From Mobula birostris (taxonomy: Eukaryota), in NCBI RefSeq assembly GCF_030028105.1, contig NC_092384.1:17243629-17307628 (forward strand): a stretch of 64,000 nucleotides of DNA. The letters are read 5' to 3'. This document shows, one piece after another, positions 12,243 to 62,345 of this stretch; within the stretch, counting starts at the first letter, position 1; every line of letters starts with the position of its first letter. Position numbers and translations under genes: made by a program. Under the pieces are notes generated by a model. It was not told the DNA's origin. It ran no database searches and saw only the letters and a program-made list of their open reading frames with translations.

Positions 12243-12472
12243 GCGTGGCTCGGTAGCGTAGCGGCGAGCCTAACTCTATTACAGCAGCAGTGATCCAGGT
12301 TTAATTCCTACGAAATGGTGTGTTTCCAGGTTTTTCCATGATCGTATGACTTTCTTTAGGTGCTCGGGCTACCTCCCACGGTTCAAAGACGTACTGGTGA
12401 GTCTACTAATTGGTCACATGGGAGTAATTGTGTGGCACGAACTAGTTGGGCCGGACGGCTCTGTTACAGTGC
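12243..12472 (+). mobile_element. tRNA-derived SINE (orthologous copy 50036-50272)
   Basis: A-box-like TAGCGTAGCGG and B-box-like GGTTTAATTCC; same position after the CR1 tail in both duplicates. Confidence 0.7.
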
Positions 12473-12474
12473 TA

Positions 12475-14100: not shown

Positions 14101-14109
14101 CAGTTTTTG

Positions 14110-14565: not shown

Positions 14566-15773
14566 GACGCAAAAGATATCGTTCGGTAAAATTGGAACAA
14601 AATGCGTTAAAATGGGTAAAGTGATTAATGAAACACGCAAACAGCAGGAATTCTGCAGATGCTGGAAATTCAAGCAACACACATCAAAGTTGCTGGTGAA
14701 CGCAGCAGGCCAGGCAGCATCTCTAGGAAGAGGTACAGTCGATGTCTCAGGCCGAGACCCCTCGTCAGGACGAAATGAAGGAAGAGTTAGTAAGTTAGTA
14801 AGAGTTGGTAATGAAACACGTTATGTTATCAAGTGAACGCAGGTGGGAAAAAAAAACTAATAACACCGAAGAGCTAGAAACCTGAAATAAAACACATCGA
14901 ACATACAAAGTCTGAGTAGATCAGCAATCATCCGTGTGAAGAGAAATAGTTAACGTTTACGTTGCGTTCTGGGGAGGGTTCTTCGATGTGAAATGTCAAC
15001 TGTTTCTCTCCCAAAGATGTCGCCAGTGCCTTTCGGTTATTGTCTGGGTTGAATCCAAATGGAGATGACAATCCTTTTACCTGTTTAAGGTATGTCTTTC
15101 CAAATTGAGGATGATATTCATTCAGCATAGCATCATGGAGTAGAAGGTGCCTTGTGGAGTTTCGTTTAACATGTGGTTATCATTGATCATCAGATGCTAC
15201 AAATGTTTTTTTGCAAGTATACTCGATTCCATTGCAGGTTATGCGCCGCTGCGTGGATCTTTTTTGCGAATCGGGGTTAAAACTGTCTATAATATTGCAA
15301 AGACCATTTCAACAAAACAAGAGTTCGTTACATTTTTACCTTGCGTACTGTCCGTCAGTTCAAATGTAACATACATTACGAATTGATTTGTACGCGTACT
15401 GTACTTTCCCATTGACCAGTACTCTGAGACTGTCGTAAACTGACAATTAGTAGTTCGTCACTGTCTCAGATTTTTTATTTAATTATTCGCCATGCGAAAA
15501 ATGATGAACAACTTAACTTCCATTAGAAAATGTTACCGTTCACCTTCCAGTGCAACCGGTTATGAACTGGTGTGGAACTGTGAAAGGATACAGGAAGCAG
15601 ATTCATCGGAACATTCAAATAAATCTTACAGATATACTTGAAAATAAAGATTTGACAGGGAAAATGAATCTTCTTTTTCCCCTACTACGTTCCAAAGTGT
15701 TATGGAATAAAATTGATTCATAATATCTTTGCTATGCGAATATTCCGCTCTGAAACAAGACGAGTCACTTCAC

Positions 15774-15820
15774 TTTTGGGTGTTCATTTTGGCATCCGTC
15801 TACCGAACATGTGTTCGCCC
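15774..15820 (-). pseudogene. Paralogue A cytoplasmic exon (GANTCSVDGCQNEHPK)
   Basis: 31/44 nt identical to exon 6; the original GT donor is lost, with an in-frame GT 3 nt further on (AAA|gtgaag); weak GAG acceptor. Confidence 0.7.
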
Positions 15821-16468
15821 CTCCAGAGAGTAAATTTAAAAGATATCAATTCCATTGTTTGAACATTATTTGAAAAAAATGAACATTATTCGTTTGATAT
15901 CAATCGAATTAATCGTGTAAGTGGAACTGTCAAAGATAAGGATCTTTCAGAAATTATTTGGTGGACACAGTCGTGATAATGTACTGTGTTGTGCAGTAAC
16001 CTGGTGCTATGCTCGAAAGGCTTTGACTTTCAACGAAGCTTTAAAGTGATAATAGCATATGAGTGGCCGTACTGCATTTAAATATGGTAACTAAAATGGA
16101 AATCAAAACCAGTGAGACGTGCATAAGTTCGTCAATGTTCTTCATACTATCCGAGGGAGAATAGATCTACGCCAAGTCGTTTATGTATCAAGATATGGAT
16201 CTGTCATCGTTTTAAAATATAACTCCAAAGGGATATAAAAGCATTAGTGAGTGCGATATGAAATACTTCGAGTGCACTGGTGAAATAGTTGAATTTTAAG
16301 ATCCAAATTGTATTATGCCAGAATATTATCTCTCAAATCAGACTTCTAAAATCGCGATCCATGTCCAATCATTCTGTAAATGTTATTTGCTGTTTTGAAG
16401 TCAAATATCATTAACGCTTTTATTTTGGACGAATAGAGATGATGTCTCTCAGCGATCAGTGTCCTTAC

Positions 16469-16567
16469 CGTACGATCTCTTTAACTCGGGTTTCAGCAAA
16501 ACTATTATCCGAACTAAAATTGCCGATCTGCCCACTGCACGCGCAAGAATCAATCTCGTATCAGCAC
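16469..16567 (-). pseudogene. Paralogue A transmembrane exon (GADTRLILARAVGRSAILVRIIVLLKPELKRSY)
   Basis: 83/99 nt identical to exon 5 by manual count; same donor context (G|gtaagg). The original acceptor is deleted, leaving an in-frame but weak ttttcgag|. No leader, V or C1 exon found upstream. Confidence 0.8.
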
Positions 16568-16934
16568 CTCGAAAAAGAAACCGTGAAGCGTTTATACTGT
16601 ACATCTAAAAGCAAATAAAGACATGAGAATCAACAATGCAAACTATTATATAGGCTCCTTTCAAATCTGAGTACAGAATGATTGGAAAATGACAAAATAT
16701 ACAGTATAGAACAAAGAAGCGTGTCTGGTATGTGCCTGGTTTCTCCAGACACATACGAGCTGCGTTTTGTCACTAACAATATGCTCGGGTGCATCTTTCT
16801 ATACTTCTCTTGACAATAAGTATTAACACATCTATTGGACGTGTAATCATCAAACTTTAGACGATTTTGAATTCGATTCAAACTATTAAGTAACGTCAGT
16901 CAATTTCCAGCATCTGCTGATTTCCTCGTGTTTG

Positions 16935-36281: not shown

Positions 36282-37487
36282 TTGAGCAAACATAAAGATG
36301 CATTTCCTGACATTCTAAGACAATGTGCATCTGCAGTGCATGACGTCATTGTAAATGCAGCCGAGCCCATCAAAGACCATCTTTACAGAATGAATTTAGA
36401 GGAAAGTAAAATGGTTGAACAAGAAATTGGAAACAATACAGAACAAGGAAAGAGAGTGGGTGACTCTATTGACAGAGTAGGAAAGGCTAAATACCTCACA
36501 AAAATTGACTTGTTAAAAGGATATCGGTGTCTTCCTTTGACAGAGAGGGCTAAAGAGATATCAGCATTTGTGATGCCACCTGGACTGTATGAGTACAATG
36601 TTTTACTCTTGGAGATAAAAAATGCTCCAGGGACATTTCAAAGAATGATCAATTCTGTGATTAGATGTTTAGAAAACAAAGGGGCTTATATCGATGATTT
36701 AGTGGTCTGGAATGACACGTGGGAAGAGCATATTGCTATGGTAGAAAAGCTGTCTGAAAGGCTGTCCAAAGCTAATCTTCCTGTGAACCTCGCTAAAAGT
36801 GAGTTTGGCCATGAGTCAGCTGCATATCTGAGCTACGTAGTAGGCCAAGGCCAACTGGCTCCTGTACAGGCCAAGGTTCAAGCAATTACTAAGGTTTTAT
36901 TCCAACCGGCAAGAATGCTTTAAGAAGATTTTTGGAAATGGTTGGGTATTATCGTAAGTTTTGAAAGAACTTTGCTGCCATCACTTTCCCCCTAACACAA
37001 CTTCTAGGGAAGAGTGAAAGAATTATGTAGAGTGATTTTTGCCAGGAGGAATTTGAATGCCTGAAAACCACCGTGTTATTATCCTGTGCTCAACGAACCT
37101 GATTTTTCCAAGCCATTTTCTATAGCAACAGACGCTAGTGGCGAAGATGCTAGGGCAGTTCTGTTACAGAAGTGAGTGGATGACTTTGAACACCCAGTAG
37201 CCTATTTATCAAAGAAATTTAATGTGCACCAGAAAAATCACTCCACTGTTGAAAAGGAATTACTAGCACTTATTCTGGCTTTACAACATTTTGAAGTCTA
37301 TGTTTGTCCTGCCCAGAGACCACTTGTGGTTTGCGCAGATCGCAATCCGTTGGTGTTTATAACTAAGATGAAGGATAAGAACAGAAGGTTATTAAATTGT
37401 AGTCTGATATTGCAAGAATATGACCTGAGAATCAAACGTATGAAAGGTACTGACAATATTAGAGCTGATTGTATATCCAGATGCTAA
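36282..37487 (+). pseudogene. Gypsy reverse transcriptase and RNase H remnants
   Basis: KIDLLKGY, KNAPGTFQRM and AYIDD (about 36687); TDASG, PVAYLSKKF, TVEKELLAL and ADCISR. Confidence 0.92.
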
Positions 37488-38580: not shown

Positions 38581-41500
38581 CCCATAAGACCATAAGACCA
38601 TAAGAGAAAGGAGTAGAAGTCGGCCATTCGGTCCATCGAGTCGGCTCCGCCATTTGATCATGAGTTGATCCATTCTCCCATTTCGTCCCACTGCCCCGCC
38701 GTCTCACCATAATCTTTGATGCCTTGGCTACTCAGATACTTATCAATCTCTGCCTTAAATACACTCAATGACTTGGCCTCCACTGCTGCCCGTGGCAACA
38801 AATTCCGTAGATTCGCCACCGTCTGACTAAAAAAATTTCTTCCCATTTCTGTTCTGAATGGGCGCCCTGCAATCCTTAAGTCATGCCCTCTCGTACTAGA
38901 CTCCCCCATCAAGGGAAACAACTTTGCCACATCCACTCTGTCCATGCCTTTCAACATTCGAAATGTTTCTATGAGGTTTCCCCTCATTCTTCTAAACTCC
39001 AAGGAATACAGTCCAAGAGCGGACAAACGTTCCTCATATGTTAACCCTCCCATTCCCGGAATAATTCTAGTAAATCTTCTCTGTACCCTCACCAACGTCA
39101 GCACATCTTTTCTTAAATGAGGAGATCAAAACTGCCCGCAGTACTCCAAGTGAGGTCTCACCAGCGCCTTATAGAGACTCAACATCACATTCCTGCTCCT
39201 ATACTCTATTCCTCTAGAAATGAATGCCAACATTGCATTCGCCTTCTTCACTACTGACTCACCTGGAAGTTAACCTTATAGATATCCTGTACGAGGACTC
39301 CGAAGTCCCGTTGCATCAAACTTTGATTTTTTTCTCCATTTAAATCATAGTCTTCCCGTTTATTTCTTCTACCAGAGTGCATAACCATACACTTTCCAAC
39401 ATTGTATTTAATATGCCGCTTCTCTGCCCATTTTTCCAATCTATTCAAGTCTCTCTGCAGACTCTCCGTTTCCTCAGCACTACCGGCTGCTCCACCTATC
39501 TTCGTATCGTCAGCAAACTTAGCCACTAAGCCATCCATTGCATAATCCCAATCGTTGATGTACAATCTAAAAAGAAGCGGCCCCAACATGGACACCTGTG
39601 GAACACCACAGGTAACCGGCAGCCAACCAGAATAGGATCCCTTTATTCCCAGTCTCTGTCTCCTGCCAATCAGCCAACGCTCCATCCACGTATGTAACTT
39701 TCCCGTAATTCCATGGGCTCTTATTTTGTTAAGTAGCTTCATGTGTGGCACCTTGTCAAAGGCCTTCTGAAAATCCAAATATACAACATCCACTGCAACT
39801 CCCTTGTCTAGCCTACTGGTAATTTCCTCAAAAAGTTGTAATAGGTTTGTCAGGCAGGATTTTCCTTGAAGGAATCCATGCTGAGTTCTGCCTATCTTGT
39901 CGTATGCCTCCAAGTAGTCTGTCTTCTCATCCTTGACAATCGACTCTAACAACTTTCCAGCCACCGATGACAAGCTAACAAGCCTATAATTTCCTTTTCG
40001 CTTCTTTTCCCCCTTCTTAAATAGCGGAGTGACATTTGCAATCTTCCAGTCCTCCGGAACCCTGCCAGAATCTATTGACTGTTAAAAGGTCATCGGTAAT
40101 GCATCCCCAATCTCCACAACGACTTCCTTCAGAACACGCATGTGCATTCCATCGGGTCCCGGAGATTTATCTACCTTTAGACTATTCAGCTTCCTGAGTA
40201 CTTTCTCTGTCGAAATTGTGACTGCACACACTTCTCTTCCCTATGACCCTTGAGTGTCCGGTATACTGCTGATGTCTTCCTCAGTGAAGACTGATGCAAA
40301 ATACCAGTTCAGTTCCTCTGCCATCTCCTTATCTCCCATTACAATTTCCCCAGAGCATAATTTTCTATCGGTCCAATATCTACTCTCACCTGTCTTTTAC
40401 TCTTCATATACTTGAAAAAGCTTTTAGTATTCTCTTTTGATATTATTTGCAAGCTTCCTTTCATAGTTAATCTTTTCCCTCTTAATGATCTTCATAGTTT
40501 CCTTTTGTAAGGTTTTAAAAACTTCCCAGTCCTCCGTCTTCTCCCTAATTTTTGCTTCCTTGTATGCCCTCTCCTTTGCTTTAACTTTGTCTTTGACTTC
40601 TCTTGTCAACCACGGTTGCGCCCTTTTTCCATTCGAAAATTCCTTCTTTTTTGGAATATACCTGTCTTGCACCTTCCTCACTTCTCGCATGAACTCCAGC
40701 CACTGCTCCTCTACTGTCCTTCCCGCCAGTGTCCCTTTCCAGTCAACCTTGGCCAGATCCTCTCTCATGCCACTGTAATTTCCTTTACTCCACTGAAATT
40801 CCGACACATCAGATTTCGGCTTCTCTTTTTCAGATTTCACAGTGAACGCAATCATATTATGATCATTGCATCCTAAGTGTTCCTTCACCTCAATCTCTCT
40901 AATCACCTCCGGTTCATTACACAATACCCAATCTAGTACAGCTGATCCCCTAGTGGGCTCAACAACAAGCTGTTCTTAAAAACCATCTCGCAGACATTCT
41001 CTCTCTCGAGATCCAGTGCCGACCTGATTTTTCCAATCCACTCGCATGGTAAAATCTCCAGCAATTATCATAACACTGCTCTTACGACAAGCCTTTTCTA
41101 TTTCCTGTTGTAATTTGTAGTCCACATCACTGCAGCTGTTCGGAGGCCTATGAATAACTGCCATCAGGGTCCTTTTACTCCTGCGATTTCTTAGCTCAAA
41201 CCATAAAGATTCTGCACCTTCCGATCCTATATCACCTCTTTCTAATGATATAACATCATTTCTTACCAATAAAGCCACGCCTCCCCCTCTGCCTACCTTC
41301 CTATCCTTCCCATAAACCGTGTATCCTTGGACGTTCAGCTCACAGAGACATACATCCTTTATCCACGTCTCAGTGATTGCCGCAATATCATACCTGCCAA
41401 TTTGTAGCTGTACGACAAGGTCATCCACCTTATTCCTTATGCTGCGTGCATTTAAGTGTGACATCTTAAGACCAGTATTTGGTACTTCTCGCTTTGATTT

Positions 41501-42550
41501 CACTGCAACTTTATCGCACTGCAACTCATCCCATTGGCTACAAGTTTGCCCCATCACCTGCCTGTCTTTCCTGACATCTTTACTGCTCACTATCTTCGAT
41601 TTATTTCTGTTTTCACCTTCCTCCGCTCTGTCATTCCGGTTCCCATCCCCCTGCCAAATTCGTTTAAACCCTCCCTAACAGCTGTACTAAACTTTCTCGC
41701 CGGGATATTGGTCCCCTTCGGTTTCAGGTGTAACCTGTCCTTTTTAAAATGGTCGAATTTCCACCAGAAGAGATCCCAATTATCCAAGAATCTGAAGCCG
41801 TGCTGCCTGCACCAGTCTCTCAGCCACGCATTCATCTGCCTGTTCCTACTATTCTTGCCCACGCTAGCACATGGCATAAGTAGCAATCCCGAGATTACTA
41901 CCCTGGAGGACCTGCTTCTCAGTTTCCTTCCTAACTCCTGGAAATCTCTCTTAAGGACCTCCTCCTTTGTCCTATCTCTGTCACTGGTACCAACATGTAC
42001 CAACCAGACAACTGGCTGCTCACCCTTCCCCTTCAGAATATTCACGACCCGATCCGAGATATCCTGTGCCCTGGCACGTGGGAGGCAACACACCATGCGG
42101 GTATCTCTATAAGGCTCACAGAATCTCCTGTCCGTTCCCCTGACTATGGAATCCCCTATGACTATCGCATTCTTCTTCTCCCTCCTTCTCTCCTGTACAA
42201 CAGCGGCAGGCTCAGTGTCAGATACCCGGTCACCGTGGGCGTCCCCTGTCAGGTCATCCCGCTCAACAGCATCCAGAACAAGATATTTGTTGCTGAGGGG
42301 GCAGCTACAGGTGTGCTCTCCGCTATCCAGGCAGTTTCCTTCCCTCTCTTGACAGTGACCCAGTTATCTGACCCCTGTAGCCTAGGGATGACTACCTCCC
42401 TGTAGTTCCTGTCTATCACCTCTTCACTTTCCCTGATAAGCAGTAGGTCATCAAGCTGCAGCTCTAGATCCCCAACCCGGTCTCTGAAGAGCTGCATCTC
42501 GCTGCACCTGGCGCAGATATGGCCATCAGGGAGGCTGGAGGTCTCCCAGG
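38581..42550 (-). mobile_element. CR1 LINE, about 4 kb, with ORF1 esterase, endonuclease and RT remnants
   Basis: ORFs 41590-42096 (CLPRA, HVGTSD), 40976-41590 (HLNARSIRNK, AITETW, AGDF), 39251-39973 (YLDFQKAFDKV, FADD); (CTTATGGT)n tail at 38581. Confidence 0.92.
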
Positions 42551-44666: not shown

Positions 44667-47639
44667 GATCGACGGCGTCAGCTCACCTGAAGATTCAAAT
44701 ATCGCTCTCTCTCTCTCTCTCTCTCTCTCTCCACCACTACTCAGCTCAACACCACGAACTGAACTGAACATTAGTCATCTTCGTAAGACTACCTATTTAC
44801 CCCATACACTTGAAGAAGCTTGGTTGTCATATATTTCCACACTTACTTATACATAATCATTGCTAACCTGTTTTATATATCTGCATTTATATTACTGTAT
44901 TGCGTAGTTTTTAATACATTCCATTAGTTAATAGTGCTTTCTATCCCTGCTGGCTGTTTAACCTGTCACGGGGTACGTGACATCTGTACCTACTCCCCAC
45001 CTTTTTTAATCCCGCACGTTATCCACTAAACACGTTGACCAGATGACCAACAATAATGTATTATTCTAACAAGATGTTCACCCTGTTGTGTCACACATAC
45101 ATCTACCTGAACCGGAGTTAATGTGTCAATTTACTGACTATTGGCCAAATAATTGCTGGGCATATTGCTGACTTATTTTGCTCCATCGGGCAATTGGGAA
45201 GTTATTAATTACTGAGGAGCTCTGTCCAGAGCACCATATTCTTCGAGGGTACACATCTAAAGACGTGATTCCTATATAAATTTACATTCTAACGTCCACG
45301 TTTTTCAGTCAAATGTTATGGTTAGGCTAAACTTGATTTCCTTTAATTTGACCATGTGCTTATTTCCTCTGCGCAGTGTGGGCTGTGAACGTAAACAGGT
45401 TGTGATGCATTTATCTTGCCTTTTGGCTGCCTTGGCATTTCTGTTACGACCATATGATAGTGCAGTTATATTTTACAACTAATTTTGAGCAGCAAGTCAT
45501 GAATGTATATGAAACCGAAGAGTACTGCATTTTCTTATCATACGACATTTACTGATAAAAATTCAGGCACAGAGGTGTTATCACGAGAATACTTTGCGAT
45601 CTTTTTTTTTCACATCTTCAAATCTGTATTTCCCTCAGTTGAACGTTGACATCAGTGAGCAAGAATAACTGTTCAATTGGTGGATGTTACCCTACAAACA
45701 ACGTTTCCCTCGCAGGCTGTGACGAATCTATGATATTTTTTTCATCCTCTGAGGACTGGGGAGGGAATAGCTTGGTGGGGGAGGGGTGTTTAAGGCAATG
45801 TAGGTTTATATCATGGAACGACTGGTAACTGTTCAATTAACCAGAAAAGGAGGTTATTGTTGAACATATCAGGCATTATCCTCTTGAATGACCGGGCAGT
45901 AGAGAGAGTTGGAATGGCACAATGTATTCTCAATCTTATCCATAAGCTTCGTTCTTTTATTTTTTTTCCAGTGATAATCGCCCCCAATAAATCGGAGACG
46001 AAATTGATCCCTTATCTTCCAAACTCATACATGTGATATCGATTAACAATCTATTTCTGGATGCAATAAATGGAACGAAACAATGCCTCGGGATAGCATT
46101 CATTGACAGTCTGTGGCTCTAAACTGCAGCTGGATTCTCAGCTTCACAGTTTCTTTGCTGTATTTACATCTGCATACAATGAATGTTGGTTTTGATGTTT
46201 GGATGCTGAGGTGTTCTTGGAATCGGGAAGCTGCAGACTGGCGTAAGTCAGTTTGTCAGCTCCAATTCTTTTCGTCTGTGGAAATATTTCAAAACCAGCA
46301 GTTAATCAAGAATCATCGATTGAACAAACTGAATCAAAGATTGTAGAATAAATTAGTGATGCGCTCATAAGTTATCAAACTAGATTTCTGCTGTTTTACA
46401 CAAAAATTTTGTCAATATTTTTTCAACTTTTTCTTTTTGATTCATATGGTATTTCTACTCTAAGAGCCTATGTTGGCCCACTGAACAATAAGCGTTTCTG
46501 TCCTTATTTGAAATGAAGTTCAACAAAATCGAATTGGTAGTGTTGTTAATTCCTTGAAGCAGCAGGTATACTGTATACAAAATATTTCGCTAACTGAAAA
46601 TACAAGCACATTTTTTTGTGTTATATGTGTCTGATTGCCGCAAGCTGTTTAGTCTATAGACCTTACTGGTATTTCCTCAGTCACACCTGAAAGCAGAACT
46701 CCAAATGCACATAGATACTGCTAACAGTGGATACCGCACAACTGATAGAATGAAGTTTGGCACTTTGTTCATTCATTCCGTATGCTTACTGTTTTGTCAC
46801 AGTTCAGTCTTTCCATCAATAACACCAATGTTCGTTTGGTTCAGTGTTCCACTGTTATTATCAGATATTCGTGTTCATTATGGAGATGACAATGGGCTTT
46901 GGAGAGGATGGCTTTCGCAGGTTCATGCTTTTTAGTATTTCCTGGTTTGCAAATTACATATGGGAAATTAAATTCGTAAAAGCAAGAGAAAAACCTAATC
47001 TTGAGGGAGTTTGCAGATGCTGGAAACCTTGAAGAATGCAAAGAAAAATGCTGAAGAAATTCATTAGGTAAGGCAGCATGTATAAATAAACTGTTGATGT
47101 TTTTGGCCGAAGCGCTTTAACAGGACAGTAAAAGGAGTCAGAAGTTAGAATAAGAAGGTGGGGAAGGGGTACAGCATGGCAGGTGATAGGAAAAACCAGG
47201 TTGGTAAGAAGGTGTGTGGATGATGGGGGATGGAGTGACGTAGAAGCTAGGAGGTGGTGGGTGGAAAAGGAAAATGGTGGAGGAAGGAGTCTGATTGGAA
47301 GAATCAATGGACCCTGGAAGAAATGGAAGAAGGAGGGGCACCAGTGGAGGTGATGGACAGATCAGAGAAGAGAAGAGAAGAGAAGAGAAGAGAAGAGAAG
47401 AGGTGAAAGGGAGCCAGAATTGGGAGCAGAGAAAAAAAAGAGAGGAGGTGGTGATGAAGTAAGTATCAAAAGTTAGAGAGATCAATGCTTATGCCTTCAG
47501 GTTGGAGTTCACCCAGATGGAACAAAAAGGTAATGATATTTCGAGGGTATTCAGTTGCAAATGTCATAGTGACAAAGGTCTGCTCAGTTCGGTAAAATTA
47601 ACCTCCTTTGGGATAATGTTTATATAAGGATACTATAGA

Positions 47640-50020: not shown

Positions 50021-50295
50021 TATATATATATGTTTTGCGTGGCTCGGTAGCGTAGCGGCTAGCGTAACACTATTACAGCTGCAGTGATCCAGGTTTAGTT
50101 CCCATACATGACTAAATAGTGGGTTTTTACGTTTTCCCATGACCGTATGCCTTCTTTGGGCGTTCGGGTTTCCTCTCACATTTGAAAGAGTACGGCGAGT
50201 CGGCTAATTGGTAACATGGGTGCAATTGGGCGGTACGAACCTATTAGGCCGGACGCCTCGGTAACAGTGTTAAATATCTGAAGAAAATTCATATG

Positions 50296-50433
50296 TTATT
50301 CTTGGCAATCTCTCTGCTTTACCTGAGAATAGATAATGCGCTCTTCTTGTTCTCGATCTTTCCGAAATCCTATGCCGTCCCGCATATTTAGTGAAACATA
50401 GGCGGTGGTGAGATCAACCGCAGCCTGTTCAGC
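50296..50433 (-). CDS. IgSF receptor exon 7, cytoplasmic tyrosine motifs (AEQAAVDLTTAYVSLNMRDGIGFRKDREQEERIIYSQVKQRDCQE*)
   Basis: Acceptor gtgttttcccaacag|, phase 0; TAA at 50298-50296; contains TAYVSL and canonical ITIM IIYSQV. An internal donor CAG|gtaaag (exon end 50323) could lead to a different last exon. Confidence 0.8.
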   Translation of the reverse strand, partial: AEQAAVDLTTAYVSLNMRDGIGFRKDREQEERIIYSQVKQRDCQE

Positions 50434-52301
50434 CTGTTGGGAAAACACATTTAATACTGATAACTGATACAAAGGTCAGTGACCATGAACTACATTTGAT
50501 TCGGAATATCTAATCATAGAAAAGTATTTAAAATGGTTGGAATGATATTTTGCGCGCGTATACTATCGTTGTTCGTATAGCATACGGGAGGTGGGATACC
50601 AAACCCATTTCAGGCTAGAAGTTGCCACGTTTATTTTAGATTTCTGAACAACCACGTAAAACCATTCTATCAATCCGATGGATTTCTCAGGTCTGGCCAT
50701 CTTTTTTTTTTCCATCTCTTCTGTCATATCCCTTACGCCCCTCCAAGTTTTGTTCATGGGCTTTATCCGATGCGATTATCTTATGCACCCCATCAAATCA
50801 TTATAATTATTGGCGTGACCAGATTTCGTCCCCATGGTGCATTTAGAACTTGTGACCCTTAAAACTCGTAATATCTACGTTGAGGACATTGGAACAAATG
50901 GCAAGACCTGATGTATTGTTCCAGCCTGGTTGAACTGAGGTAGCGAATACGGAAGGGGCATCTTGCCCGCTGTTGAACTGATTGGTGTTGCTGGTGAATC
51001 AATTAAACTACAATAAAATTAAATAGAGCAATTGGACATGGCAGCAGTAAGTCGTTAAAACAGCATTTGTTATGGCTGAAGCAATGACATAGCATTCCAG
51101 AGGAATAAAGTGACAGTGCAAAAACAATCTTGAACGATCCAGTTTCAACTTAGATTTTTCTCTCAGAAGCCGTCCTTCTTTTCGGGAAGTGATACGAACA
51201 CTGATGGAAGTTTTAACGGAGTTCTACTATAATGAAGCCAGTGATATATGACAACCTTGTTTTGGTGATATGAAAAGTTGCTGCAGCAAATATCGTTAGG
51301 TAAATGTAAAATAATGCGCAAAAATTGGGAAGATGATTAGTGGAACACAAGAAGACATTTTCAGTTTTAGTCAGATAAAATCGACAAAGATTTAATATAT
51401 TCTAAAAGGAGAATCCAGGTGGGACAATTTTATTAACATTGAACTGCTGTAAATTTAAAGTAAATTCAACAAATAAAACACACAGTAGATCAGGAAACAC
51501 GAGAGCAAAGAGAAACAGTTGAAGTTGACACTGCTTTCTGTGGAGGGGTGTTCAATCTGAAACGACAAATGTTACTCTTTCCCAAGATGCCGTTAAGATT
51601 TTTAATTTCTGGTTTACATCGAAAATGAGAGATGACAATACATTTATAGATTTCATGTACTTCTTTCAAAATTGAGGATGATAAACATTCAGCGTAGCCT
51701 CGTGGAGCAGAAGGAGCCTTGAGAAGTTTCGTTACCACCTGTGTTTCATTGTGCACCAGATAGTACACGGTGTTATTGGAAGCATATTCGATTCTATACA
51801 CTGCTGTGTGGATCTTTGTTGGGAATCCAGGTTAAAAACTGCATATGAGTTCCAAAGCAAGACTTCGTTGCAGTTTTTTATCTTGCTTACTGTGCGTTCA
51901 AATCAATTGTAACATATATTGCGAACTGATTCATGTGTGTAATGTATTTTCCCAATGACCACTACACCACGATTCTCGTAAACCGACATTTGACTTCTAA
52001 AACATCCCAGTCTTAGATTTGGATTTAATCATTCGTCACACGAAGAATTATTAACAGCCTAACTTCCCTTAGTCTACATTACGGTTCATCTTAATGTAAC
52101 TGATATGGAATCCTGAAAGACTATAGGAAGCAGATTCAACAGGAATATTCAAATAGATCTTGGATATATGCTTCAAAATAAAGAGTTGTCACAGAGTTTC
52201 ATTCTTCTCTACTGCGTTCCAAATGTTAGAACAAAATAAATTCATAATGTATCTGCTATATATATACGTCGTTCTGAAAGAAGAGGAACCACTACACGTA
52301 C

Positions 52302-52345
52302 CGGCTCTGCATTCTGACATCTGTCCACAGAACTTGTGCTAACCC
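52302..52345 (-). CDS. IgSF receptor exon 6, cytoplasmic (GVSTSSVDRCQNAEP)
   Basis: 44 nt, phase 1-0; acceptor tttcttttatttcttaag|, donor CCG|gtacgt; supplies the phase change needed to reach exon 7; homologue at 15774-15820. Confidence 0.8.
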
Positions 52346-52978
52346 CTTAAGAAATAAAAGAAATTATTTGCATTGTAAAAACTGGACATTATTCGTTTCA
52401 TACCAATCGAGTTCAACGCTTAAGAGGAAATACCTAACGTACGGATCCTTCACAAATCATATTTTGGTATCAGTTGCCTTAGACTGTGCATCAACACCAT
52501 GGCACTATGCTCAAGAGTCTTCGACATTTAACGAAGCTGTAAAGTGATAATAGCATATGTATGGCCGTACTACGTTTAAATACTGTCGCTAAAATAGAAA
52601 TTAAAATCATTGAGACATGCACGAGTTCGTCAATGTTCTTTACACATTCACAGTAAGTCCAGACCTACGCCAAGTTGCATACGCTTCAGAATATGGATCT
52701 GCCATTGTATTGTAAACGACATTTGAAGTACCCCAAAGGGATATGACGGCATTTATGAACAAGATACAGCCTGTAAATACAGCGAGTGGACTGGTGAAAT
52801 TAATGCACTTAACATCCAGCTTGTGTTGTGCCTGATGGTTAACAATGTAATCATGTTCGTGCATCTCAATCTATGTCTAATCATGCTGTAATGACACATT
52901 CTTTTTGAAGTTAAATATCTTTAGCGCATCTATTTTGCACGAATAAAGCTGATATTTCTCAGCGATCAGGGTCCTTAC

Positions 52979-53086
52979 CGTGCGATCTCTTTAACTTGAC
53001 TTTCACCAAAACTATTATCAGAGCTAAAATTGCCGATCCGCCCAGTGCACCTGCCACAATGAATTTAGTATCAGCACCTTGTGGCC
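52979..53086 (-). CDS. IgSF receptor exon 5, transmembrane (GPQGADTKFIVAGALGGSAILALIIVLVKVKLKRSH)
   Basis: 108 nt, phase 1-1; acceptor ttcttgttttacccctgtag|, donor CACG|gtaagg; 20-residue uncharged hydrophobic stretch with GxxxG, then a basic stop-transfer (KVKLKR). Confidence 0.9.
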
Positions 53087-53319
53087 CTACAGGGGTAAAA
53101 CAAGAAACTGTGAAGCATTTATACATCTAAAAACAAATCCACACATGAGAATCTACAACGTAAATTACTTCATAGGCTCCTTTCAAATCTCACTGAACAT
53201 ATCGTAAAATATATCATGAGACAGGAAATGCAGATTCCCACCTTTGTTATATCAAGATAAGGTAAAGAGTTTAAGTGTTGCATTATCACAGTTTTGCCAA
53301 ATGATCAGAAGTTTGTTAC

Positions 53320-53349
53320 CTTCCAAATACTGCACGAATTCAATTCGTC
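53320..53349 (-). CDS. IgSF receptor exon 4, candidate 30-nt stalk microexon (GRIEFVQYLE)
   Basis: Acceptor ttaagtagtgtag|, donor GAAG|gtaaca; phase 1-1 and open between the C1 and TM exons. It can be skipped without a frameshift. Confidence 0.55.
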
Positions 53350-53662
53350 CTACACTACTTAATATAATGGAAAAACACGTCAGTTCTTGAACATCTTTCA
53401 CACTGAATATTAATTATCAATATTAGTCATTCTTCCTTGTTTGAGTAGCTGTTCAGTTACCGTTCTTAACAAAGTCACATTGACCCCACCATTATGACTA
53501 ATAAGCCATTCCAACTTACACTGAGCGCAAAAGATTCTGAACATGCTGAAATCCAGAGTAACACATAAAGTCCTGGAGGAACTCAGCGGATCAGACAGCT
53601 CTAAAGTGTCGACATTTATGTCCGAGATCCAACATCATGACCTCATCGAGACACCATCTTAC

Positions 53663-53956
53663 CTTGGTCCAGGAAGTAGCTGAAACTGGCGGGCACCTTG
53701 AGGGAGACGTGCGATACCAGACAGGTGTAAACATCTTTTCCCCAAGTAGACTTCCTGATTTCCAATAAACTAAAAGCTTCGTACAAGCCATCCATGCTCC
53801 GGTTTGTCACACTTTCTATTCCAGTGCGAATTTGCTTGTTATTTCTTTGCCAGACGATTTCTACTTTCTCCGGGTAGAAGGCAGCCGTTTTACAAAGGAG
53901 CTTTCGAGGAGACGAAAACTCTCCAACAGGAACAATTTCCAAAGGAGTTGGAGGAG
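53663..53956 (-). CDS. IgSF receptor exon 3, C1-set domain
   Basis: 294 nt, phase 1-1; acceptor ttgtttttttcccaag|, donor CAAG|gtaaga. Motifs LLCKTAAFYPEKVEIVW, DGLY, YTCLVSHVSL match the C1-set signatures CxxxxFYP...W and YxCxVxH. Confidence 0.93.
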
Positions 53957-54989
53957 CTTGGGAAAAAAACAAAGTTATTTTGGGTACTTTCAATCCATTT
54001 CAGAGTAGGTAGGTTCCCTTAATTCCCCGCCAACTGGCATGACGCTCTAACTCTAATTCTTTCAATTTTACGTTCAGTTTATTGTTGCTCAAGCGTTGAC
54101 ACACACCTCTAAGCGAAACATTGCTCTTCTGGGGTAAATTGCAAAATACAGTACATATCATCACACATAGCACATGTAGTTACCATCCAGCACAGACAGT
54201 CACAAAACAAGCAAAATAAAATGGAGTCACCTTAGGGAACGGATGAAAGGAATAGTTCAGAGAATACATATCGATGGCGAATCTAAAAGGTTCGAAATGA
54301 GGAAGACATTCTCTTTGAATGGTATTTGAGCTTCATTGCACAGTTGGTTTGCGGCGGGCATTGGCTTTGGAAACCTGGCTACTTTTGGATTTTTCATTTC
54401 GTATAAGACTGAGCTACAAAACCCAAATATCACAGATTTCTATAGCACATGGAGTATAATATTCTAGCAGCTCAATTGCTAAGGGAGTGTTTCAGGTCTT
54501 GGGGTTGAGCTTTCAAGTAATAAAAATTCAGTAATAGAGTTTCCCTCGAAATGTAAACCATTCCTGCAACAGTTCCTCGTATTGAATGTTGTAAATTATA
54601 TCCTCCGTGAAACAACCAGGAACGCAAATGCACATTGATGTTAAGTTCATTGATTCTGTAGTTCTATTCTTGCTAAAGCCTGCAGAAACATAGTCGACAG
54701 TGACTTGGCACTGCTATAGGATCGTTTGTGAAAATCATGCCTTGCAGAGTGTCAAACAGGAACTGAACAACTTCAATTGCACCATACACAGAGTTTTCTA
54801 AAACATGAGCCCAATTTTAAGGTTTTGTAATCATAGACTGCTTCGGCTGCAGCTATGGTCGGTGTCTAACGGGGGGATTCAATAGTTATACTGCTTTATC
54901 TGTTTATAACATCAGTTAGGATTTCGCTCTGCTTGCAATGGCCATCCCGCGTTCACGGTTGCCCGATTCCATCTCCCACGCCTATACCG

Positions 54990-57900
54990 ACGTCAACGAT
55001 TTTGGCCTTGTTAAATTTTTGGTGAAGGGCAATCCCAAGGTGAAAAAAATCGAAGGCTTTCACAGATACATTAAGCGCAAAGGGATAGCGACAAACAAAA
55101 TTGATCCATTTGAAGATCAGCGTGTTCAACAATGCATGGAGGCGAAAGAGATGGAGGGAGATCTTATCTATTTCCATTTGTTTTTACTTGGGAGACGTGC
55201 ACAGAGACTATACAACTCATGCAAAACAGAAGCAATGTCATTGCCCACATACGGATTACTGCCTTGAGGCAAATTAGGGTGCAGAAGTTTCCCGAATATG
55301 GCAAGGTGTCCCACTGGACCTCGCTGGAGGCTAGTGCAGAAAGTGAAAGGGCCCCGATAGACGTATTCAAGATATCCTTACTCATTGGTGAAGTGCCGGA
55401 GGACTAGGGTATAACTAATGTTTTAAGACCATATGACTATTGGATATAGGAGCCGAGTTAGGCCATTTGACCCACCAAGTTTGCTCTGCCATTTCATCAG
55501 AGTTAACATTTACCTCTCAGCCCCAATCTCCCGCCTTCTCTCCGTAGTTCTTCATGCTCTGACAAATCAAGAACCTAGCAACTACAGCTTTAAATATCCA
55601 TAAACACTTTGTCTACATAGCAGTCTGTGGCAAAAAAATTCCACGGGTTCACCATTCTCTGGCTATAGGCATTCCTCTTTATTTCTTTTTTTTAAAAGGA
55701 TGCCCCTCTATTGTAAGGCTGCGTCCTCTGGTCTGAGACTCTCCCACCATAAGAAACATCCTCTCCACATCCACACTAAACAGTATTTTCACCTTCAACA
55801 GGTTTCCATGCCATCGCTCCTAATTTATTTTTTTTCTGAATTCTAGTGAAAACAGTCCCAGAGCCATAAATCCTCTACATATGACTAGTTATTTAATTCT
55901 GGAATCATTGTCGTGAACCTACTTTGAACCTACTCCAGTTCCAGTACATTCACAGAGAGGGCCTAAAACTGCTCACAATATGCCATGATGCCTCACCAGT
56001 GCTTTACAAAGTCTCAACATTACATCTTTGCTTTTATATTCTAGTCCTCTCGAAATAAATGCAATCATTGCATTTGCCTTCCTGATCTCAGACTCAACCA
56101 GCAAATTAACCTTTGTGGAATACTTCACACGGACTCCCAAGTCCCTTTGTGACTCAAAGTTTTTTGTATTTTCTCTCCAGTTAGAAAATAGTCAAAACTT
56201 TTATACCCTCCACCAAAGTGGATGGCCACACTGCATCCCATCTGCTATTTGTTTGCCTATTCTCCTAATCTGTCTAAATCTTGCTGTAGTCTCTCTACCT
56301 GCCTGTCCATCTATTTTCATATCGTCTGCAGCTTTGCAACAAAGCCATCAATGCCATCAACCATATCACTGACATATAACCTTAAACGAATAGGTCACAA
56401 CACAGACCCCTTTGGAACACCATTAGTGACGGGCAGCTAACCAACAAGTATTTCCTTTATTCCCACTCTTTGTCTTCTTACCAACCAGCCACTGTTTTAT
56501 CCACCCTAGAATCTTTCCTGTAATGCTTTGGGCTCGTAGCTTGTTAAACAGCCTTGTGTGTGGTACTATGTCAAAGGCTTTTTGAAAATCCAAGTACACA
56601 ACAACAGATTCTCCCTATCTTTATCTATCCTTTATTCCTTTCTTCAAATAATTCAATCGGATTTGTCTGGCGAGAGTTTCCCTTCAGGAAATCTTGATTA
56701 ATATGGCGTATTTTATTATGTTCCTTCAAGTAACCTAAGACCTGATCCTTAATAATGGACTCCAAAATCTTGTCAACCAGTTAGGTGAGACTGACTGGCC
56801 TATAGTTTCTCTTTTCTGCCTCTCTGCCTTCTTGAAGAGTGGAGTGACATTTGCAACTTTCCAGTCTTCCAGAACCATTCCAAAATCTATTAATTTCTGA
56901 AAGACCTTTACTATTGCCTCCACAATCTCATCAGCAACTTTTATAAGAACCCTGGGATGTACATCATCTGGTCCAGGTGAAATACCTACCTTCAGACCAT
57001 TTAGTTTCCCAATAACTTGCTCTCCAATTATGTCTCTAGTTTGCCGCTGTTCAAGATAGACTCTGGGAATAAACCAGGATATTATAGACCAGTGGGTATT
57101 ACAGACAAGTGGGTAGTTTATTCGAAGCTATTCTAAAGAATGTGACATATACCGTAAATTTTAAGATAGACTGGGCTTGTTTGGGAATAGGCAATATTGT
57201 TTTGTGCAATGTAGGCTGTGTCTAACCAATCTCAAAGAGCTTATTGAACCGGTTACCAATGCTCCTGATGAAGGATAACAGTGGATGTGGTCAACATGAC
57301 TTTTAGCAAGAGCTTTGTAAAAGTTCTTCATGGGGGTGGCGGGCTGATCATGTACGTTCGCTTGGCATTCAGAACGAATGAGTAAATTGTATCTAACGTT
57401 GGTTTCACGGGAGAATCCAGAGTATGGTAGTGGATGGCTGATCTTTGAATGAAGGCCTTTGACTAGTGGTGTAGGCATTGCTATGAAAGTTTGCAGAGGG
57501 TCATGGAGCAGGTGGGCTGAAAATGGCAGATATAATTTAATGAAAGTAATTGTAAGCTGTTGCACTTTGAGAAGACAAACCAGTCTCGGATATACACAGT
57601 CAAAGAGACTGGCATTGAGGAGTGCGGTAAAAATAATCTTGGAATATAGATCGATAATTCATTGAAAGTGGAGTCAATGACGGATAGTATCGTAAAGATA
57701 GCCTTGGTTATACAGGCCTTCATATATCAGAATATTGAGTGTAGAAGTTGGGATGTTATGCTGAATTTGTATTAGATATTAGTGAGAACAAATTTGGAGT
57801 ATTGTTTGCAGTTCTGGTTACCTATCTGCAGGAAAGTTATCAATATGATTGAATGAGTACAAAGAAAACTTACAAGGAAGTGGCATGAATTTGAGGACAT

Positions 57901-58200
57901 GAATTATGAGGAAAGGTTTAACAGGTTAGGATTGTTTCCATGATTCGTATGAGAACGAGCGAACTTTTGATTGAGGCATACAAAATTATGAGGGATGTAG
58001 ATATGGTGCATGTAAGCCTGCTTCATCCACTGAGGTTGGGTGAGAATGGAATTGGAAGTCATTGCTTAAGAATGAAATGAGAAGTATTAAATACGAACCT
58101 GAGGGGAAACGTCTTCACTCAGACGGTGATGCTACTGTGCAATGAGCTGCCAGCGGAAGTTTTAAATGTAGGTTTGCCCTCGACTCTTTACACTTTACTA
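54990..58200. mobile_element. CR1 fragments in the V-C1 intron (+ 54990-55435; - 55435-57040; + 57045-58200)
   Basis: GFHRYIKRK, DWKVANVTPLFKK, FSKSFVK and LEYCLQFW motifs; CATATGAC tail at 55435. Confidence 0.8.
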
Positions 58201-58963
58201 TTAGCCCTATCAAAATTCACCTCGATTTTGAGAGGTTTATATTTCTCCCCATTTTGTATGGTGAAAGAAATATAGATTTTGCTAATCCTGCATGACAGAA
58301 GTTGGAATGACAATTGCAGTGCATGCGACAAATTGTTACTTGATGTTGTGATTAACTGGTTTGGAGCTGGGTATTATTCCTCTCTACTAGTTGATGCGTA
58401 AATGGAGCATTGTGTTGCTGCATACAGACCCTTTGATAGTGATTATTCTATTAAAGTATTAATATTTTGCCTCCTCGGTGATGACGAATCGAGTTATCCA
58501 ACTCCAACTATTCACATTAACATTAACATTATTTCAGCCTTTTGCTTGCAAAACAATCCTAACCTTGCTTGAATGTTAATTCGTTGCATTCAAAAAGTAC
58601 CTTCGCGATAATGAGGGTAAAATCGAAAGGTTTCACGAACCTTGGACATTAGCTTTAACTGGGAGATCGCTGATGAAGAGGGCTGGACTAGAGCAGAGGG
58701 AAAGAGCCGGTGAAATACGATACAATGAACAGAACCAACTCTATTATGCGCCGAATGGTTGCTACATGAAATGTGATTAATTCTTCTGTTCTTTTTAAGT
58801 CTGAATTTAGAATCTCTGGACTGGGATGTATTTTAACGCGGGAAACAAATATATTCTAGCCGTTTGTTTTATCCAGTAGAAACTTTTCGTTTTATCCTCA
58901 GCACTAAGTTTAAGTTTGATGTAAAATGCACAGAACCGAAAATCTCCAAGCAGCCACACTCAC

Positions 58964-59269
58964 CGAACACAGTCAGCTTGGTACCACCTCCAGTCCCGAA
59001 AGGTTGTTCCTGATAGTTTGCTTCACAGTAATACAGTCCGGAGTCGGCCAATTTGACATTCCAGAGTGCAAGTTCTCCCCTTCCCCTTTCTACGGTAAAA
59101 TGACTTCTGTTGTCCCTTTCTAAGAATGCTTTCTCGCCTTCCCTCCACCAACGAACGTCAACAGTACCTTCTGATATTGGAAATTTGCAGAACATAGTAA
59201 CATTCTCACCACCCAGGACTTCCAGTTCCCTTGGTAATTGAGATACTTCGCTTGCAGTTACTTTGACCG
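58964..59269 (-). CDS. IgSF receptor exon 2, germline-joined VJ-type V domain
   Basis: 306 nt, phase 1-1; acceptor ttctttatttttccggaag|, donor TTCG|gtgagt. Translation VKVTASEVSQLPRELEVLGGENVTMFC...VRWWRE...DSGLYYCEANYQEQPFGTGGGTKLTVF has both Cys, the C-strand Trp, DxGxYxC and a J-like GxGTKLTV in one exon. Confidence 0.93.
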
Positions 59270-59472
59270 CTTCCGGAAAAATAAAGAACAGTATTAATAA
59301 CAGTTAAATACAGTGAATTAAAAAAAAAACTGAAGACGTAAGTCACTGGATATCTAAGAGCCAAAGACGATCGAATAGCTGAACCACTGTAACCGAATAT
59401 GCTGCAGGCACTCAGGGTTTAATATTCTAAAATATTATTCCGTTCGGAAACGGCGTGTATAAATCAGCATAC

Positions 59473-59527
59473 CTAGCCAAGTAATAGCCAGAAGTGCCAA
59501 GTACGAAACCGTAAATTTCTCCGACAT
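59473..59527 (-). CDS. IgSF receptor exon 1, signal peptide (MSEKFTVSYLALLAITWL + phase 1)
   Basis: ATG at 59527-59525; 55 nt (18 codons + 1); hydrophobic core; donor CTAG|gtatgc; phase 1 joins the V exon as GCG (Ala). Confidence 0.85.
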
Positions 59528-59559
59528 CTTACAGAAACCAATCGACAAATTCCTGCAAT

Positions 59560-59640
59560 GCAAGTGGTATTTTAAAGCAAGTGCTGGAGGAGAAGTTCTT
59601 CATGAGGAAATGTATCAATATGACGTGGGATGACGCCACA
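59560..59640 (-). promoter_or_regulatory. Candidate proximal promoter of the IgSF gene
   Basis: TATA-like TTTAAAA on minus near 59570; GAGGAA (Ets-type core) at 59604-59609; two CRE half-sites TGACG at 59621 and 59631, 10 bp apart. Motif match only. Confidence 0.4.
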
Positions 59641-60311: not shown

Positions 60312-62345
60312 CGAACATAAAACATAGAACATAGAATACTACAACACATTACAGGCTTTTCGGCTCACAATGTTGTGCAGACCCTCAAACCCTGCCTCCC
60401 ATATAACCCCCCACATTAAATTCCTTCACATACCTGTCTAGTAGTCTCTTAAACTTCACGAGTGTATCTGCCTCCACCACTGACTCAAGCGGTACATTCC
60501 ACGCACCAACCACTCTCTGAGTAAAAAACCTCCCTCTAATACCCCCCTGGAACTTCCCACCCCTTACCTTAAAGCCATGTCCTCTTGTATTCAGCAGTGG
60601 TGAACTGAGGAAGAGGCGCTGGCTATCCACTCTATCTATTCCTCTTATTACATTGTACACCTCTATCATGTCTCCCCTCATCCTCCTTCTCTCCAAAGAG
60701 TAAAGCACTTTCTCCCTTTATCTCTGATCATAATGCATACTCTCTAAACCAGGCAGCATCCTGGTAAATCTCCTCTGTACCTTTTCCAATGCTTCCTCAT
60801 CCTTCCTATAGTGAGACGACCAGAACTGGACACAGTACTCCAATTGTGGCCTAACTAGAGCTTTAGAGAGCTGCATAATTACATCGCAACTCTTAAACTC
60901 TGTCCCTCGACTTCTGAAAGCTAACACCCCATAAGCATTCTTGACTACCCTATCTAACTGTGAGGCAACTTTCAGGGATCTGTGGACATGTACCCCGAGA
61001 TCCTTCTGCTCCTCCACACTAGCGGGTATCCTGCCATTTACTTTGTGGTCTGCCTTGGAGTTTGTCCTTCTAAAGCGTACCACCTCACACTTCCCCGGGT
61101 TGAACTCCATCTGCCACATCTCAGCCCACTTCTGCATCCTATCAATGTCTCTCTGCAATCTTCGACAATCTTCTACACTGTCTACAACACCACCAACCTT
61201 TGTGTCGTCTGCAAACTTGCCAACCCACCCCTCTAGGCCTACATCCAGGTCGTTAATAAAAATCACGAAAAGTAGAGGTCCCAGAACAGATCCTTGTGGG
61301 ACACCACTACACACAATCCTTCAATCTGAATGTACTCACTCCACCACGACCCTCTGCCTTCTGCAGACAAGCCAATTCTGAATCCACCTGACCAAACCTC
61401 CGTGGATCCCATTCCTTCTGATTTTCATAATAAGCCTACCGTGTGGAACCTTGTCAAATGCCTTTTTTAAAATCCATTTAGATCACATCTACTGCACTAT
61501 CCTCATCTATATGCCTGGTCACCACCTCAAAGAACTCTATTAGGCTTGTTAGACACGATCTGCCCTTCACAAAGACATGCTGACTGTCCCTGATCAGACG
61601 ATGATTCCCTTAATGCCCATAGATCCTATTTCTGAGAATCTTTTCCAACAGCTTTCCAACACAGACGTAAGTCTCACTGGTCTATAATTACCCGGACTAT
61701 TCCTACAACTTTTTTTGAACAAGGGGACAACTTTCGCTTCCCTCCAATCCTCCGGTACCATTCTCGTGGAAAACGAGGACATAAAAATCCTAGCCAGAGG
61801 CTCAGCAATCTCTTCCCTCGCCTCATGGAGCAGCCTGAGGAATATTCCGTCAGGCCCCGGGGACTTATCCGTCCTAATGCATTTAACAACTCCAACACGT
61901 CCTCTCCCTTAATATCAATATGCTCCAGAGCATCAGCCTCACTCATATTATCATCAGGTTCACTCTCATTGGTGAATACCGAAGAGTATTTATTGAGGAC
62001 CTCGCTAACTTCCACAGCCTTGAGGCACATCTTCTCTAATCGGTCCGACCTTCACTCCTGTCATCCTTTTGTTCTTCAGATAATTGAAGAATGCCTTGGA
62101 TTTTTCCTTTACCCTACTCACCAAGGCCTTCCCATGCCCCCTTCTTGCTCTTCTCAGCCCCTTCCTAAGCTCCTTTCTTGCTTCCCTATATTCCTCAATA
62201 GTCCCATCTGATCCTTGCTTCCTAAACCTCATGTATGTTGTCTTCTTCCACCTGACTAAATTTTTCACCTCACTTGTCACCCATGGTTCCTTCACCCTAC
62301 CATTCTTTATCTTCCTCACCGGGACAAATTTATCCCTAACATTCT
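60312..62345 (-). mobile_element. 5'-truncated CR1, relatively intact RT
   Basis: ORF 60718-61314 (GVPQGSVLGP, FADDTK, LEYCVQFW); (TTCTATG)n tail at 60312-60335. Confidence 0.92.

Follow-up and report, generated by a model that had tools for sequence, protein, structure and literature searches.

The window analysed here is a stretch of 64,000 nucleotides (nt) from Mobula birostris (assembly GCF_030028105.1, contig NC_092384.1, positions 17,243,629 to 17,307,628 of the forward strand); all positions below are counted from its first letter. On the minus strand, from 59527 to 46144, lies a seven-exon gene of the immunoglobulin (Ig) superfamily. It probably encodes a functional type I receptor with a compact variable (V) domain that carries its joining (J) strand in the germline, one C1 domain, an uncharged transmembrane segment and a cytoplasmic tail with immunoreceptor tyrosine-based inhibitory motifs (ITIMs). 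Its exons, domains, motifs, orthologue, family and partial transcription are directly documented. An original prediction, made from the letters of the window, had proposed a VJ exon, a single C1 exon, an uncharged transmembrane segment and a tyrosine-motif tail in a chondrichthyan family, and comparison of sequences supports this core.

Gene structure

The gene was delineated by reading the three minus-strand frames of 50200-59600 with a scan for splice sites. It was then corrected with full-length relatives, which HMMER, searching exhaustively from the C1 exon, recovered and tblastn placed on the window. A slash marks a splice junction.

59473 to 59527, minus strand: exon 1, 55 nt, ATG at 59527, most of the signal peptide, phase 1, donor GTATGC
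58964 to 59269, minus strand: exon 2, 306 nt, V-set domain and J-type G strand in one exon
53663 to 53956, minus strand: exon 3, 294 nt, C1-set domain with the hallmarks FYPE and YTCLVSH
52979 to 53077, minus strand: exon 4, 99 nt, short stalk, uncharged transmembrane segment (GALGG) and stop-transfer sequence KLKRSH
52302 to 52345, minus strand: exon 5, 44 nt, cytoplasmic, placed by homology (tblastn of relatives)
50323 to 50433, minus strand: exon 6, 111 nt, cytoplasmic, TAYVSL and IIYSQ/T, donor CAG/GTAAAG
46144 to 46275, minus strand: exon 7, 132 nt, last coding exon, LTYASL and SLYADV, TGA stop, acceptor TTTCCACAG

The corrected coding sequence (55+306+294+99+44+111+132 = 1041 nt) has an open frame and canonical splice sites and encodes 346 amino acids (aa). 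Exons 1, 2 and 3 and the 44-nt exon have AG/GT sites and are all in phase 1, as is usual for Ig superfamily genes. For these four exons, independent reading and splice sites agree with the leader, VJ, C1 and 44-nt exons first proposed. All 18 residues of exon 1 are identical to the RefSeq product of the gene (P0172), and the C1-transmembrane junction DQ/GADTKF is identical in P0172 and in the orthologue P0213; both proteins are described below.

The 3' half of the earlier model has been redrawn. Its 324-aa product gives way to one of 346 aa, which gains an extra 132-nt exon at 46275-46144 (80% to P0002 by tblastn; family hidden Markov model (HMM) E-value 2.4e-19), and the gene reaches 4.2 kb past its earlier limit. 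The 138-nt exon ending at 50296, formerly the last, overruns the consensus donor at 50323; spliced there, it has 111 nt. The transmembrane exon had been given 108 nt from an acceptor at 53086; homology favours the acceptor at 53077, so that on sequence evidence the exon most likely begins 9 nt later. The acceptor at 53086, which adds 3 aa and is used in a paralogue isoform (P0168), may serve as an alternative.

Two sets of candidates were set aside. The 30-nt exon of the earlier model is one of six AG..GT candidates of that length and is absent from P0172, P0213 and all relatives. Other candidates for the 44-nt exon, such as 51800-51757 with an ITIM-like IEYASN, were dropped for 52345-52302 by homology.

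The V and C1 domains

Pfam assigns the V exon to the V-set (2.4e-11) and the C1 exon to the C1-set (5.4e-14, vs 0.14 for the CD80-like C2-set), in agreement with the predicted order of a V domain and one C1 domain. Only one C1 exon is found in the gene and in the window by tblastn and family HMMs, and the ectodomain cysteines form only two intradomain pairs. The transmembrane segment is uncharged, as had been claimed, and contains GALGG.

The V exon reads on without a break past its second cysteine (YYC) to a G strand of the J type, FGTGGGTKLTVF, with the motif GGGTKLTV. A J motif of the form GxGTxLxV is conserved in 26 V domains of the family. The interval 58700-59400 contains no recombination signal heptamer (CACAGTG/CACTGTG), which bears out the earlier statement that the J motif shares the V exon and that no heptamer follows. 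Judged by its sequence, the gene does not rearrange, and its VJ exon is joined in the germline.

The fold was modelled with AlphaFold2 (AF2) on the paralogue P0002, which is 79% identical to the window protein without gaps, from a family alignment of 40 sequences. Both Ig domains have predicted local distance difference test (pLDDT) scores above 90 and are followed by a transmembrane helix. The modelled V domain has no strand between strands C (56-61) and D (74-80), and is thus predicted to be compact: it lacks a C'' strand and with it the CDR2-like loop (complementarity-determining region 2). From the conserved Trp to the second Cys it is about 10 residues shorter than SIRPα domain 1 (D1). 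The compact V domain without a C'' strand explains why I-set proteins turn up in sequence searches. The C1 domain has its full strand set, including strand D.

The cytoplasmic tail

The tail is about 100 aa long and has four tyrosines, in TAYVSL, IIYSQT, LTYASL and SLYADV. The tyrosine-motif tail of the original prediction is therefore present, but as about 100 aa with four tyrosines, not 68 aa with two. One of its two motifs, the ITIM 'IIYSQV', is an artefact of reading into the intron; the spliced form is IIYSQT. LTYASL (LxYxxL) and SLYADV (SxYxxV) are canonical ITIMs and stand 23 residues apart, a spacing that suits the tandem Src homology 2 (SH2) domains of SHP-1/SHP-2, as in SIRPα, PECAM-1 and similar receptors. 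Both lie in exon 7, the exon missed in the earlier model, and it is mainly this exon that marks the tail as putatively inhibitory. The whole tail of P0002 has pLDDT below 40 in the AF2 model, which suggests that it is disordered. An Atlas search with the tail reached scores of at most 0.79, to the small Tyr-motif adaptors C1orf162, LST1, SIT1 and SCIMP, and is uninformative.

A mechanism can be proposed by analogy with known inhibitory receptors. The germline J-type G strand would spare the V domain any need for rearrangement, and that domain would bind a putative ligand. Src-family kinases would phosphorylate tail tyrosines, and the paired ITIMs would dock the tandem SH2 domains of SHP-1/SHP-2, dampening activation in the cell type that bears the receptor. 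SHP docking by ITIMs is the mode of SIRPα and other ITIM receptors. Read-through of the donor of the 44-nt exon would give a second, short-tailed product without ITIMs.

RefSeq annotation and the orthologue

The gene is already annotated in RefSeq, where it and its relatives stand under misleading names. Residues 1-266 of the corrected product are 100% identical to Mobula birostris XP_072135229.1 (P0172, 285 aa), named 'natural cytotoxicity triggering receptor 3 ligand 1-like'. In this model, the sole one of the gene in RefSeq, the donor of the 44-nt exon is read through to a stop at 52244-52242, and the product has no ITIMs. The corrected model restores the exon with both canonical ITIMs, which the RefSeq model of the gene lacks.

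The orthologue in M. hypostoma, XP_062923464.1 (P0213, 346 aa), falls in the 90%-identity cluster of P0172 and is named 'tyrosine-protein phosphatase non-receptor type substrate 1-like'. The 346-aa model aligns to it without gaps at 94.5% identity. By exon, 16/18 residues are identical in the leader, 97/102 in V, 96/98 in C1 and 28/33 in the transmembrane exon; in the tail the figures are 15/15 for the 44-nt exon, 34/37 for the 111-nt exon and 41/43 for the last exon. Thus the tail exons are as well conserved as the ectodomain, and all four tyrosine motifs are kept in P0213.

A chondrichthyan family

The exhaustive HMMER search recovered V-C1 proteins with the C1 domain at about residues 122-218, and all the named ones are chondrichthyan. 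They come from Mobula, Hypanus, Hemitrygon, Pristis, Narcine, Amblyraja and Leucoraja, and from Heptranchias, Heterodontus, Chiloscyllium, Hemiscyllium, Scyliorhinus, Mustelus, Carcharodon and the holocephalan Callorhinchus. In profile searches the E-value passes from 7e-42 for the last family member to 1e-4 for sequences outside the family (CD4-1, embigin, pIgR). Among the papers that could be searched, none dealt with the chondrichthyan family or with SIRP-like genes of cartilaginous fish. Within these searches the expectation of a poorly characterised chondrichthyan family holds.

Public annotation hides the family under at least eight unrelated names, including SIRPα-like, SIRPβ1-like, NCR3LG1-like, Ig lambda-1-like, TCRβ-like, tapasin-related-like, MHC class I-like, MHC class II-like, PD-L1-like and CD276, and these automatic names are inconsistent even across near-identical genes. 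It had been foreseen that pipelines would choose 'Ig lambda-like' or 'SIRP-like', and RefSeq indeed uses SIRPα-like, Ig lambda-1 light chain-like, NCR3LG1-like and others.

Several lines of evidence point to an old tandem family, found only in chondrichthyans in these searches. C. milii has at least four family genes within 15.25-15.39 Mb of one scaffold (MU249845.1), and both mantas have runs of consecutive RefSeq accessions, pointing to tandem clusters. In the elephant shark, the gene for P0162 follows the seven-exon plan of the window gene, with an unsplit VJ exon, a 111-nt tail exon, and V plus one C1. Because the elephant shark shares this plan, the design predates the split between holocephalans and elasmobranchs. 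A tree of 31 family ectodomains resolves two clades (97/88); the window gene lies in an elasmobranch-only clade, within a myliobatiform expansion, as sister to P0213 (100/99).

Not all members are of the inhibitory type. P0174, P0176, P0066, P0138 and P0202 have Arg or Lys in the transmembrane core and short tails without Tyr motifs, and P0174 (Arg) groups by ectodomain with an ITIM-bearing member (100/99). Since such short-tailed members with a basic transmembrane segment are also present, the family most likely works as paired inhibitory and activating receptors. Cartilaginous fish thus appear to keep a large, tandemly duplicated family of single-chain receptors (VJ, C1 and transmembrane segment) with ITIM tails and activating counterparts.

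A possible pair occurs in Mobula birostris itself. P0174 (XP_072135221.1) and P0217 (XP_072135222.1) are probably neighbouring genes, by their consecutive accessions. P0174 has an Arg in its transmembrane segment and a 33-aa tail without Tyr motifs; P0217 has a long tail with an ITIM. P0174 groups with P0165 (100/99), itself a cluster-mate of P0217 at 90% or more. In sequence terms, P0174 and P0217 bear the signature of paired activating and inhibitory receptors.

An annotated variant lies at the edge of the family. The Callorhinchus milii protein P0221 (L001), 'NCR3-like isoform X2' of 266 aa, has the family tail (76% identity to the tail of P0162) and a Pfam V domain with no C1 recorded; it represents either an isoform that skips C1 or a member with V alone.

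Relation to SIRP

Mammalian SIRPs are known as 'don't-eat-me' receptors, and in SIRPα and SIRPγ the V domain binds CD47. SIRPs themselves have long been described as an antigen-receptor-type ectodomain joined to an ITIM tail. The window protein is built in this way, with an ectodomain of antigen-receptor type and a SIRPα-like tail. The design, VJ plus C1 plus ITIM with activating partners, is already known from SIRPα/β, and its novelty is smaller than was first claimed. Shared with SIRPα/SIRPβ are a germline-encoded V domain whose G strand is of the J type, a C1-set domain, one transmembrane segment and a four-Tyr tail that includes ITIMs. Short-tailed members with a basic transmembrane segment, as in SIRPβ, are shared at the level of the family and not by the window gene. 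SIRP consists of one V domain plus a pair of C1-set domains, and it signals through SHP-1/2 (PMC12975943).

The family could accordingly be a chondrichthyan orthologue or co-orthologue of SIRPα/β in which the second C1 domain was lost or never acquired, and so simply 'shark SIRP'. This reading is possible but doubtful. By whole protein, SIRPα is the nearest named full-length relative: the nearest named clusters in the Atlas embedding are SIRPα (0.97 and 0.96), and in Swiss-Prot Foldseek ranks bovine SIRPα (2.7e-15) first and human SIRPα (6.9e-15) second, with TAPBPR, PD-L1, TCRβ, CD276, Skint, NCR3LG1 and butyrophilins close behind. SIRPα is also the third-best chain of the Protein Data Bank (PDB) for the family profile (4.8e-24), which matches SIRPα over D1-D2 (48 bits) and again over D3 (39 bits). 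The start of the C1 domain, VPPTPL, resembles that of SIRPα D3, VPPTLEV. The tail has four tyrosines, and their arrangement matches that of SIRPα, (L/I)TYAxL then xxYAx(V/I), twice. The family also has SIRPβ-like paired members with Arg or Lys in the transmembrane segment.

Against this stands the architecture. The window gene and its orthologue have one C1 domain where SIRP has two, and V-C1, not V-C1-C1, is the rule in nearly all members, including that of the elephant shark. The family V domain, compact and without a C'' strand in the AF2 model, also differs from that of SIRP. Matched as a contiguous V plus C1, PDB sequences of Ig lambda (65 bits) outscore SIRPα. SIRPα is nearest by whole protein, but Ig, T-cell receptor (TCR) and UrIg2 sequences are nearer than SIRP domain by domain. 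Profiles built from V alone or from C1 alone score highest with Ig/TCR V domains, Ig constant domains and UrIg2, and leave SIRP outside the top 60 PDB chains. A check of synteny in the 10-kb flanks of seven family genes turned up other family members at most. No database search, three of them limited by a word index, brought up a bony-vertebrate SIRP. The exhaustive C1 search returned no true SIRP, Ig light-chain or TCR sequence with a SIRP-type tail, and three word-index searches, within the limits of such an index, returned only members of the chondrichthyan family.

Two models with a double C1 would fit a SIRP origin. One from the skate Amblyraja radiata (P0035) and one from the bamboo shark Chiloscyllium plagiosum (P0164) have two nearly identical tandem C1 domains (V-C1-C1), which may stem from a recent exon duplication or from an artefact of assembly or annotation. 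If real, their architecture would converge on that of SIRP. Placement of the family with SIRP would push SIRP-type paired receptors back to the base of jawed vertebrates.

Transcription and the short product

The RNA data are Logan contigs, compared with the stretches 50250-54000 and 53650-59600. In a run from the same species (X2), an exact 159-nt contig spans the 5' part of the V exon and 30 nt of intron 1, short contigs lie on the transmembrane exon (52978-53042), and an exact 191-nt contig (52207-52397) is unspliced across the 44-nt exon. A further X2 contig, from a 93%-identical paralogue, matches as far as the C1 donor at 53663; its next 64 nt have no counterpart in the stretch compared. 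In two runs from a related species, contigs join 58964 straight to 53955/6, and the one-letter offset agrees with the Val codon that the P0002-type paralogue has. Transcription is thus attested for parts of the gene, and the V-to-C1 splice for close relatives.

Several observations weigh against a functional inhibitory receptor. Contigs over the two stretches compared include no spliced read of the exact gene, and those of the same species show no splicing either at the V-exon acceptor or over the 44-nt exon. Of the V-C1-transmembrane-tail junctions on which the original prediction would have been checked, the V-to-C1 join is seen in a related species, and in the exact gene none. The 111-nt exon has zero depth in the one run that covers it. 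Of the four tail motifs, TAYVSL fits only a relaxed form of the immunoreceptor tyrosine-based switch motif and IIYSQT is not a canonical ITIM. Since the RefSeq entry for the gene is confined to the short, ITIM-free form, the case for a product with ITIMs is made by conservation and by the gene model of the orthologue.

These points raise the alternative that the main product is the 285-aa short-tailed form, acting in SIRPγ fashion as an adhesion molecule, decoy or co-receptor, with the ITIM exons rarely or never used. This is unlikely. It draws on the sole RefSeq model, on the exact contig 52207-52397 that passes through the donor of the 44-nt exon, in the same run in which the 111-nt exon lacks depth, and on several batoid paralogues annotated only as the short form. 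The two downstream exons are nevertheless intact, have consensus splice sites and are 92-95% identical to those of an orthologue annotated as the long form. The contig itself resembles unspliced RNA more than a finished isoform, because it retains 52 nt upstream of the exon, and contigs attest presence, not absence.

The short form, annotated as it is for several batoid paralogues as well, may be a regulated isoform.

Relation to UrIg, Ig light chains and T-cell receptors

Models of how antibodies and T-cell receptors arose are built on germline VJ-C1 genes. The VJ-type V-domain receptor family PRARP was reportedly defined in chicken, by Fu and colleagues in 2019. PRARP (2019, cited in PMC10751288) and NKp30/NCR3 are non-rearranging VJ-type Ig superfamily receptor genes that have been discussed as relatives of the pre-RAG receptor. 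NKp30 differs from the window gene in having a single V domain and no C1. Shark UrIg and UrIg2 are treated as the best surviving candidates in models of antigen-receptor origin (PMC12227049). The secreted UrIg carries three C domains and UrIg2 at least nine (PMC12227049, PDB 9dmx), and their C1-type domains form an antibody-like homodimer (PMC12227049).

The window gene shares with UrIg/UrIg2 an unsplit VJ exon preceded by a separate leader exon and followed by C1-type exons, and all are cartilaginous-fish genes; in the PDB, UrIg2 also ranks near the top of the matches to the C1 domain. By its number of C domains, one C1, the gene does not belong with them, and it differs further in its ITIM tail, activating counterparts and large tandem family. 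V-C1 similarity to UrIg2 is only 45 bits, and no ITIM is mentioned in the UrIg2 paper (PMC12227049).

With Ig light chains and TCR chains the gene shares the V-C1 module, and with a TCR chain the whole V-C1-transmembrane plan. Ig lambda is the best contiguous V-C1 match, as noted, and Fab light chains are the best structural match (Foldseek against the PDB). In contrast to Ig and TCR genes, the window gene has no V/J split, recombination signal, C'' strand or interchain cysteine in the ectodomain, and it has an ITIM tail of its own.

From these comparisons the family might be read as a separate ancient line of membrane-bound germline receptors (VJ, C1 and transmembrane segment), as close to Ig light chains and TCR as UrIg/UrIg2 are, older than the holocephalan-elasmobranch split, and present in ITIM and basic-transmembrane forms. 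Such a reading is distinctly improbable. If true, it would provide a living model of a pre-RAG antigen-receptor chain wired to signalling, and placement apart from SIRP would add a third non-rearranging lineage of antigen-receptor-like genes.

Members of the B7 family such as NCR3LG1 combine a V domain without a J motif with a constant domain and act as ligands for CD28/NKp30-type receptors. That the gene encodes a B7-family ligand (NCR3LG1/B7-H6-like) is barely tenable: the RefSeq name NCR3LG1-like and Foldseek matches to NCR3LG1, PD-L1, CD276 and butyrophilins (about 1e-13 to 1e-12) suggest it, but that name is one of at least eight in the family, the scores of SIRPα, TAPBPR and TCRβ are equal or higher, Pfam favours the C1-set by a wide margin over the CD80-like C2-set, the V domain has a J-type G strand, and an ITIM tail is a feature of receptors.

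Surroundings of the gene in the window

A functional ITIM-bearing receptor remains the favoured identity of the main gene, and a relic of a tandem paralogue lies downstream of it on the same strand. A second full gene in the window was considered, and six-frame family HMMs found only this 5'-truncated relic. No V, C1 or 111-nt exon was found in the relic or between it and the main gene. The percentages are from blastn and include intron flanks.

9243 to 16668, minus strand: 5'-truncated relic of a tandem paralogue (tblastn, family HMMs and blastn)
16571 to 16470, minus strand: transmembrane-like exon of the relic, with three Arg codons, 78%
15827 to 15777, minus strand: degenerate copy of the 44-nt exon in the relic, 68%
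9530 to 9390, minus strand: well-kept copy of the last exon in the relic, with both ITIMs, 84%

Elsewhere the window consists mostly of transposon debris, with the following open reading frames (ORFs).

13363 to 13941, plus strand: DDE transposase ORF
36282 to 36923, plus strand: reverse transcriptase ORF
39251 to 39973, minus strand: reverse transcriptase ORF
40976 to 41590, minus strand: endonuclease ORF
60718 to 61314, minus strand: reverse transcriptase ORF

Within the 5-kb V-C1 intron of the main gene, 55441-58226 consists of repeats with fragments of reverse transcriptase-like ORFs. The k-mers of these repeats are extremely abundant in the RNA contigs of all three runs, with summed depths of thousands to tens of thousands and many internal joints, and the repeats probably represent an active or recently active retroelement family. 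At the start of the window, 98-655 on the minus strand holds a 185-aa ORF with weak, sub-threshold Pfam matches to the OSK domain (1.3e-5, 25 bits vs a cut-off of 27) and to GDSL lipase; the ORF may be part of a transposon.

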